Assembly: GCA_965202585.1 (NCBI GenBank)
Contig: OZ241831.1
Location: forward strand, 45,446,001-45,510,000
Direction: 5' to 3'
From: Thalia democratica
Lineage: Eukaryota
Length of the DNA: 64,000 nucleotides
Position numbers and translations under genes: made by a program. Positions 40,822 to 42,147 of this stretch are shown here, piece by piece. The notes under the pieces were generated by a model. It made no database searches and was not told where the DNA came from. It saw only the letters and a program-made list of their open reading frames with translations. The stretch's first letter is position 1; every line of letters begins with the position of its first letter.

Positions 40822-42147
40822 TTACAATGAAGTAACTTTACCCATAAACAAAGTACGATTTTCAAACAAAATCATGAACAAAAATGGATGATCAACCGTA
40901 AAGTGAACTGGTCTTGGTTTTTTGAAATTCGTGAATTCTTTTTTATCTATTCCTGTTGCTGCAGCAGCTTCAGTTCCTTCTTCACTTGTCTCAACGAAAG
41001 CTTTGTGAACTACTTCAGATACATAGAGTTCTTTTTCTTCGGTTGACATTGCACTAAAATCTGCATTTTCTTCGTTAAATGCATCTTTAACTTCATCTAC
41101 TCCTGTTGATGCAGCAGCTTCAGTTCCTTCTTCACTTATCTCAACGAAAGCTTTGTGAACTACTTCAGTTACATGGAGTCCTTTTGAACGCATGGACATT
41201 GAACTAAAGTCTGCATTTTCTTTATCAAAAGCGTCTTTTATTACCAATGAACAGAATGTTTTGTTCAAACTTGCTTCATACTCGATTTTGACCTTTGGCA
41301 TTTTCAACAAGATATATTTCCAATCGAAATTAAAAGGATCATTTAAGCTTTCAATAGTGTCAGCGTCTAAATGTTTTATTAAATCATTAATCCCGAACTG
41401 TTCATTGGGTAAAACAATAAGCATGCTAAATTTTTTTTGCTTGTAAGGAATTTTGACACACTTGAACCCTTTTTCATCAACTGCAAAGTATGAATAGAAA
41501 TCTGTATGTGTCATCATTTGAACAATATAAGTTTTCTTTTCATTACAATAGAACGTAGCATCTCTGGTGTTAGTTGACTTAAACTTTCGATCCCAATCAC
41601 CTTTGAAATGGATACAACTGGCTAGAACACATGCTGTATCAGGATCTAGATCACTTAATAAGTCGTCAATTTTTTCATTAGTACAACTTGCAACCCAACT
41701 ATTGATTTTTGTTTTTGTTCCTTCTGCATTTTTATCAAAGTATGAAGTTTGCATATGGCATTTAAAAGCTAATTCCATGTCAATTTTGCACTTTGCAACC
41801 ATCGGAAACGTTTGTGATGGAAAAACAGAATTAGCCAGTTTGATTTGTAAACCTTCAGAGTTGGAATCGAGTACATCATTCAGCGCTTTTAGCTTACCAA
41901 GAAGTTGTTCATCTTTTACAATTCCTAGTTCTTTTTCAATTTGCTGCTTAGTTGTACCGTTAGAACCCAATAGTAGCATTGACAGAGCAAGCGAAACGCT
42001 CAATGGTGAAAAGAAAATGTTTTTATTTTCGTCAGAGCTTTCACAAAGCAGTTTGAAAAGATTAACATCAAACGAATAAACACTTTTGTCATTTTTCAGA
42101 GAGCTTTTGGAATGCTCGTCACATGAATTTAAACTCGCCAAGTTCAT
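40822..42147 (-). CDS. Serpin 1 (441 aa from the ATG at 42147), uninterrupted ORF, no signal peptide seen, with a 50-aa tandem duplication of the s5A-hinge module
   Basis: [46 protein letters not shown] twice, and F.VDHPFLF...LFMGKV. A candidate acceptor ttcAG lies just before the ATG, so an upstream exon is possible. Confidence 0.95.
   Translation of the reverse strand: [441 protein letters not shown]

Follow-up and report, generated by a model that had tools for sequence, protein, structure and literature searches.

Inhibitory serpins have one strand 5A and one hinge, and their reactive loop inserts into sheet A as strand 4A once it has been cleaved. The native serpin is kinetically trapped, in that full loop insertion needs either cleavage or the extraction of strand 1C, and what keeps the trap closed is the shortness of the link from strand 5A to strand 1C. 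Once cleaved, a reactive loop inserts of its own accord. Im, Ahn and Yu are said to have removed the kinetic trap of alpha-1-antitrypsin by extending its loop artificially, which reportedly gave an inserted, stable fold. Here we describe two neighbouring serpin genes of Thalia democratica, serpin 1 and serpin 2, which lie in a 64,000-nucleotide stretch of contig OZ241831.1 (positions 45,446,001 to 45,510,000; the whole stretch is called the window, and positions are counted from its first letter). Canonical clade-B-like serpins have a single module of helix I, strand 5A and hinge, whereas each of these genes encodes two such modules in one chain.

Several described serpins come close to this layout. 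In the loop-extended alpha-1-antitrypsin the extension is an artificial linker in a human serpin, while in the window serpins it is natural and consists of a second copy of strand 5A and hinge. Several hinge and loop modules per gene are also found in Manduca serpin-1 and Drosophila Spn42Da (PMC4006314). In genes of that type the modules are separate exons with introns, often with their own stops, and one is used per mRNA; a locus that we examined (L032) is an example of such exon cassettes, with two terminal cassettes 830 nt apart that each end in a stop. In contrast, the units of the window serpins are contiguous, lie in one open reading frame (ORF) and have no usable splice sites. The domain-swap model describes the exchange of a strand 5A/4A hairpin between serpin molecules (PMC5668662), and the hairpin donated in the domain-swapped antithrombin dimer is roughly the module that is duplicated in the window serpins. 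In domain-swapped polymers the hairpin comes from another molecule, whereas the window serpins would supply it from within their own chain and keep a further copy spare.

Two hinge modules in one serpin chain

Serpin 1 is encoded on the minus strand at 40822-42147 (441 amino acids, first ATG at 42147, stop codon at 40822-40824) by an intronless coding sequence identified from the ORF list, Pfam and AlphaFold2. Serpin 2, also on the minus strand at 52308-53675 (455 amino acids, first ATG at 53675), is 90% identical to serpin 1. These genes account for the two long minus-strand ORFs, 40822-42171 and 52308-53699. Both proteins gave full-length matches to the Pfam Serpin family (PF00079), with E = 1.9e-113 and 379.9 bits for serpin 1 and E = 1.4e-114 and 383.6 bits for serpin 2 against a curated cut-off of 27; the match is split into two stretches because of the internal repeat. 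The serpin fold was also recovered by AlphaFold2 (pTM 0.83) and by Foldseek comparison of the model with solved serpins (E = 1e-40, with target TM-scores reaching 0.95). The named proteins most closely related to them are leukocyte elastase inhibitor and serpins B3, B4 and B6, at 30-36% identity. With clade-B-like, ovalbumin-type inhibitory serpins the window serpins share the full domain, the consensus hinge and the C-terminal block of strands 1C, 4B and 5B. By eye the N-terminus of serpin 1 is not hydrophobic and a signal peptide is not obvious. An AATAAA motif overlaps the serpin 1 stop codon (TTG TAA TAA AGA, 40816-40824), and the serpin 2 copy (52353-52361) lies within a frameshifted tail that is described below. 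These motifs could be polyadenylation signals; chance matches are frequent at 25% G+C.

We found that a segment of 150 bp, encoding 50 amino acids, is repeated in tandem and in frame in both genes. In serpin 1, unit A (41089-41238, minus strand, residues 304-353) comprises helix I, strand 5A, hinge A and P8-P3, and unit B (40939-41088, minus strand, residues 354-403) comprises a second helix I, strand 5A and hinge. The corresponding units of serpin 2, also on the minus strand, are unit A at 52617-52766 and unit B at 52467-52616; both were defined by repeat finding and an alignment of all four units, and unit B also by a contig of sequencing run X2. Tandem Repeats Finder reported a period of 150 with 1.9 copies in each gene, with 88% matches and a score of 449 for serpin 1 (40945-41222) and 89% matches and a score of 460 for serpin 2 (52468-52747). 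Units A and B abut in frame in both genes and the ORFs remain open throughout the repeat.

The inhibitory hinge consensus, with glutamate at P17, glycine at P15, threonine or serine at P14 and small residues at P12-P9, is present twice in each gene (EEGTEAAAS / EEGTEAAAA). In the translated serpin 1 sequence hinge A (P17-P7) occupies residues 339-349 (41101-41133, minus strand) and hinge B residues 389-399 (40951-40983, minus strand). The distal reactive loop and strands 1C, 4B and 5B, ending in GKVTSL, are present in single copy (40825-40938, minus strand), and the length of the distal loop between hinge B and strand 1C is normal for the family. The distance from hinge A (E339) to strand 1C (~414) is 75 residues, with a second strand 5A and hinge in between, compared with ~25 residues in paralogues. 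The window serpins thus have neither the single strand 5A nor the fixed loop length of canonical inhibitory serpins.

These results bear out the description in an earlier note on this DNA, which had reported a 50-residue in-frame tandem duplication of the module of strand 5A, hinge and reactive loop. Both ORFs read exactly as quoted there, and EEGTEAAA is kept in all units, in line with its statement that the hinges are intact in both paralogues. It had also predicted a protein of ~390 amino acids once one unit is removed; deletion of a unit in silico leaves 391 amino acids, which compares with 397-409 in the closest paralogues and ~372 in most of the family.

The whole 300-nt double unit matches only serpin 1 and serpin 2 in the 800-Mb genome, and these two genes are the only ones with two hinges among the paralogues. 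When the full-length protein was used as the query, the relatives were all single-hinge proteins of at most 59% identity, from Tara Oceans marine metagenomes. One of these relatives (P0010) carries an 11-residue tandem duplication in its reactive loop, AATGIRMCYES / SAATGIRMCYERS, which suggests that small in-frame loop duplications are recurrent in the lineage.

The earlier note had proposed searching databases for a second hinge and had said that it knew of no described serpin of this kind. We searched the 100-residue double unit against 1.84 billion representative proteins and examined the multi-hinge matches. These included proteins with 7 hinges (P0121), 10 hinges (P0140) and two hinges at the 50-residue spacing (P0237). 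The first two were rejected as equivalents, since they read, from sequence alone, as complete alternative loop cassettes run together. P0237 was rejected as well; its gene model joins two alternative terminal exons that lie 830 nt apart, each with its own stop. No double unit was found among fragment-sized proteins with a C-terminal 152-residue query. A scan of JGI metagenome contigs with a degenerate DNA pattern for two hinges separated by a gap gave three matches, all of them false, being alanine/glutamate-rich repeat proteins, and an ESM Atlas look-up returned generic serpin clusters only. Our literature search on duplicated or double serpin hinges and on intronless serpin expansions found no description of a double-hinge serpin, so that the statement holds for the literature and the protein databases searched. 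The double-hinge layout is unique within this genome, with no equivalent among the public sequences searched. Other kinds of partial C-terminal tandem repeat were seen in predicted serpins or serpin fragments that may be either real or gene-model artefacts: a 31-residue repeat of strand 5A and hinge (P0209) and repeats of 116-155 residues (P0130, P0136, P0186).

An alignment of the four units placed A of serpin 1 close to A of serpin 2, and B close to B. Since each unit groups with its counterpart in the other gene, the internal duplication is older than the gene duplication. Between A and B the first halves (helix I) are divergent at many positions, some of the changes being synonymous, with a synonymous divergence (dS) of ~0.63, which agrees with the divergence of the first halves reported earlier. 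For comparison, dS is 0.50 between serpin 1 and the nearest single-hinge paralogues and 0.064 between serpin 1 and serpin 2. Judged by the synonymous divergence of the first halves, the gene duplication is at most a third as old as the internal duplication. The second halves (strand 5A and hinge) of A and B have a dS of 0.03-0.06, and in serpin 1 their third codon positions are 100% identical, compared with 65-96% towards other paralogues. The units are mosaics: either conversion within the gene keeps their second halves alike, or the duplication fused two different paralogues. We found no near-identical donor of either unit in the genome; the best match was 84-88% identical.

A predicted loop-inserted fold

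AlphaFold2 was run on serpin 1 with an alignment of 78 sequences and gave a model with a mean pLDDT of 86. In this model strand 5A of unit A (residues 324-337) is followed by a three-residue turn, after which hinge A (341-354) runs antiparallel as strand 4A, the whole block having a pLDDT of 90-98. Residues 358-402, which belong to unit B, have a pLDDT below 50 and form a disordered linker, and strand 1C is in place at 414-417. The Foldseek neighbours of the model are almost all cleaved or latent serpins, among them cleaved SCCA1 (Pso p27), Spn42Da and CBG, cleaved horse elastase inhibitor (1hle, rmsd 1.5 Å) and latent conserpin. The top match, 4zk0, is chymase-cleaved SCCA1 (Pso p27) with its loop inserted (PMC5668662). 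The predicted sheet A has six strands, the hinge taking the place of strand 4A, and in this the model resembles relaxed serpins, whether cleaved or latent (PAI-1, antithrombin, conserpin). In those serpins the slack comes from cleavage or from extraction of strand 1C, whereas the serpin 1 model is uncut, has strand 1C in place and draws on an encoded 50-residue insertion. We regard the inserted hinge A of this model as suggestive.

The pattern of substitution was also compared between the units. Between the genes unit A differs at three places, which all fall within its last 8 residues; the eight changes of unit B are scattered along its length. Compared with unit A, unit B has more residues that are without precedent at their positions in the family (N5, E17, E18 and E20 in unit numbering), and its linker between helix I and strand 5A is more acidic (TEEKE). 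The conservation of unit A apart from the loop end, together with the scattered changes and unprecedented residues of unit B, would be consistent with insertion of hinge A. The ratio of non-synonymous to synonymous divergence (dN/dS) between the genes, 0.70, is likewise consistent with what would be expected if inhibitory constraint had been lost.

The best supported reading of these data is a permanently loop-inserted, non-inhibitory serpin. It rests on structure prediction and inference, and we judge its chances to be slightly below even. According to this reading the common ancestor of both genes acquired the in-frame 150-bp duplication of helix I, strand 5A, hinge and P8-P3. If translated, the chain would run through strand 6A, helix I, strand 5A and hinge of unit A, then helix I, strand 5A and hinge of unit B, and on to the loop and strand 1C. 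The 50 extra residues would remove the strand 1C tether that holds the metastable state, which would let hinge A, still uncleaved, go all the way into sheet A as strand 4A. This would leave the molecule permanently relaxed and hyperstable, with six strands in sheet A, and turn unit B and the old reactive loop into an acidic, flexible linker of ~60 residues at the surface. Proteases would not be trapped in the canonical way by such a protein, which would at most serve as a stable scaffold, a protease substrate or a decoy. A further step, which we hold more loosely, is that this pre-relaxed, hyperstable and non-polymerising scaffold displays the second module and the old bait on a loop of ~60 residues and has been kept by selection in two diversifying paralogues; we think this possible, though less likely than not.

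Of the mechanisms put forward in the earlier note, the idea that one module pre-fills sheet A gains suggestive support from the modelled hinge A, which forms strand 4A at a pLDDT above 90. The idea that the protein has two baits or fires twice was unsupported. With hinge A filling sheet A, hinge B would find no slot left, and the tether of any protease caught by the distal loop would be 50 residues too long for that protease to be deformed.

Several observations weigh against the loop-inserted reading. The homologues were all aligned on unit A, and the low confidence of unit B is therefore partly an artefact. A single-hinge control from the family (L003) was also modelled with its hinge partly inserted, at low confidence, which suggests that AlphaFold2 leans to insertion in this family; the neighbours of this control were a mixture of native and cleaved serpins, native SCCA1 being the best by rmsd (1.9 Å). 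The dN/dS of 0.70 between serpin 1 and serpin 2 is statistically inseparable from neutrality, other paralogue pairs having values of 0.17-0.5 and similarly recent pairs 0.17-0.30. In serpin 2 one nucleotide is missing from the final codons (TCA TTG TAA to TCT TGT AAT, 52308-52355), which replaces leucine and stop by cysteine and a 14-residue tail, CNKDFILSFFHYLFT, so that the conserved stop of the family is lost. The coding sequences of the two genes (1.32 kb) have no internal indels, compared with 33 gap events in 5.6 kb of flanking non-coding DNA of the segmental duplication in which they lie (5.9 per kb), yet this contrast weakens if AT-rich non-coding DNA is inherently more indel-prone. 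Finally, runs X1-X5 and X7 cover the non-coding flanks as DNA would, and no matching run is recorded as RNA.

Alternative explanations

Tandem repeats are a classic cause of misassembly, and the double unit could in principle be a repeat collapsed or expanded during assembly. However, the units differ at 12% of sites, two paralogues have the same structure with A matching A and B matching B, and both junctions are bridged by contigs from sequencing runs. The A/B junction of serpin 1 (41088/41089) is spanned by a 442-nt contig of run X1 from organism A (40984-41425) and by a 174-nt contig of runs X2/X3 from organism B in another study (40995-41168, 0 differences). The junction of serpin 2 (52616/52617) is spanned by a 130-nt contig of X2 (52523-52652, 0 differences), a single run. 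The depth of runs X1-X3 is even across the non-coding flanks, which indicates that these runs are genomic DNA. The junction of the units is bridged for serpin 1 in two studies with differently labelled organisms and for serpin 2 in one run, and an assembly artefact is effectively refuted. A second way to an ordinary single-hinge serpin would be the removal or choice of one unit at the RNA level, as an exitron or as alternative modules. Multi-loop serpin genes with alternative exons are common, and the database proteins with 2-10 hinges (P0121, P0140, P0237) are of that kind. In the window serpins, however, the units abut with nothing between them; neither gene has a GT...AG pair 150 nt apart or an in-frame splice candidate with a reasonable donor and acceptor; the family of more than 100 genes is intronless; and the frame is kept in both units, which an intron would not need. 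Joints of the type 'skips 155-158' were rejected as splicing, the contigs being single-unit paralogues with replaced letters. The removal or choice of one unit at the RNA level seems highly improbable.

The remaining explanations accept two units in the protein and differ in what it does. The duplication may be a functionless variant, tolerated in a redundant family with fast turnover, with the genes silent or decaying and the frame open only because little time has passed. In favour of this are the dN/dS of 0.70, above the range for recent family pairs and inseparable from 1, the 11 differences within the units between the genes, all of which are non-synonymous, the frameshift at the last codons of serpin 2, the many stop-bearing paralogues, which indicate active birth and death of genes, and the matching runs, which behave as DNA. 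In addition, the identity between the copies ends ~50 nt upstream of the ATG, and the promoters may therefore differ or be missing. On the other hand, both units are open in both genes even though, by synonymous divergence, the internal duplication has at least three times the age of the gene duplication, the coding sequences lack the indels seen around them, and both hinges retain the full consensus. Moreover the serpin coding divergence of 4.5% exceeds the non-coding 3.3%, which would fit diversifying selection at least as well as decay and, as we weigh it, better. The selection signals are mixed, with the frame kept and yet a dN/dS of 0.70, and selection on the window serpins looks relaxed; we consider a functionless variant possible but doubtful. 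The proteins might instead still be metastable inhibitors, either with hinge A and a bait made at the junction, or with unit B as the working strand 5A and loop and unit A as an excursion that is tolerated. In the first case P1, counted 17 residues from E339, would be Asp355 (VDEVK-D|AF; EIE-D|AF in serpin 2), with unit B as a long P' side; in the established serpin mechanism the P' side is the leaving group, and extra length is allowed in principle. Both hinges are intact and of the inhibitory type, the stretch between hinge B and strand 1C is as long as is normal in the family, and changes between the genes are concentrated at P9-P2 in units A and B alike, a pattern also shown by paralogues selected for specificity. 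Against inhibition, the 50-residue slack means that hinge A could insert spontaneously without the barrier of strand 1C extraction, the AlphaFold2 model shows the inserted form at high confidence and speaks against metastability, albeit with an ambiguous single-hinge control, and a tethered second hairpin of strand 5A and hinge would be expected to self-insert or promote polymerisation under the domain-swap model (PMC5668662). We therefore regard a metastable inhibitor as improbable.

The X1 contig (40984-41425) has four private changes, all non-synonymous (Y278H, F307L, S316A and R320H). This variant has a depth ~3x that of single-copy flanks, and it is also present as a minor variant in X2 and X3. 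We read the contig as a haplotype or an extra copy in organism A.

Genomic setting and significance

A search of the genome with serpin 1 gave 127 matches, corresponding to more than 100 serpin copies. All full-length paralogues examined consist of one ORF without interruption; among them the hinge is conserved and the loop hypervariable. Many serpin paralogues in the genome contain stop codons. The expansion is lineage-specific and comprises more than 100 clade-B-like intronless serpins. Tandem clusters of serpins were seen on contigs C7 (2.76-2.88, 47.59-47.63 and 59.15-59.30 Mb), C5 (20.84-21.10 Mb), C4 and C9 (5.96-6.05 Mb).

The window has ~25% G+C, and serpin 1 and serpin 2 lie in the two copies of a tandem segmental duplication of ~11.5 kb. 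Copy 1 (33958-42848) contains a BACK-Kelch gene (36590-37855) and serpin 1, and copy 2 (45501-54368), which is 93.6% identical to copy 1, contains a BACK-Kelch gene (48118-49380) and serpin 2. The high identity between the copies stops ~50 nt upstream of the serpin ATG, and the Kelch coding sequences differ by 1.7%, less than either the non-coding or the serpin coding DNA. The window has four single-exon Kelch-repeat ORFs in all (22577-23659, 36590-37855, 48118-49380 and 62757-63932), of which three have a BACK domain; no BTB domain was found inside the four. The Kelch ORFs may be another expanded family. A reverse-transcriptase fragment (RVT_1) on the minus strand at 58160-58648 is probably a retroelement remnant.

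Mitochondrial COX1 of this data set (L033, C1833:8315-9631) reads correctly only with the ascidian code, in which AGR is glycine and TGA is tryptophan; it has 23 AGA and 10 AGG codons at glycine positions and 5 TGA codons read as tryptophan. This code marks the source of the DNA as a tunicate. Degraded COX1 copies with many stops on the nuclear contig C4 (56.84-56.94 Mb; L034, L035) are probably nuclear mitochondrial insertions.

If the genes are silent or decaying, the double-hinge serpins would be a mere curiosity of gene birth and death within a large tunicate serpin expansion. With a natural serpin that has a second strand 5A and hinge in its tether, one could test the folding trap, intrachain loop insertion and how polymerisation is resisted. 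If the loop-inserted reading is true, the window serpins would parallel in nature what loop extension does by design and would amount to a domain swap inside one molecule, and they would show how non-inhibitory scaffolds can arise from a fast-evolving family of inhibitors.

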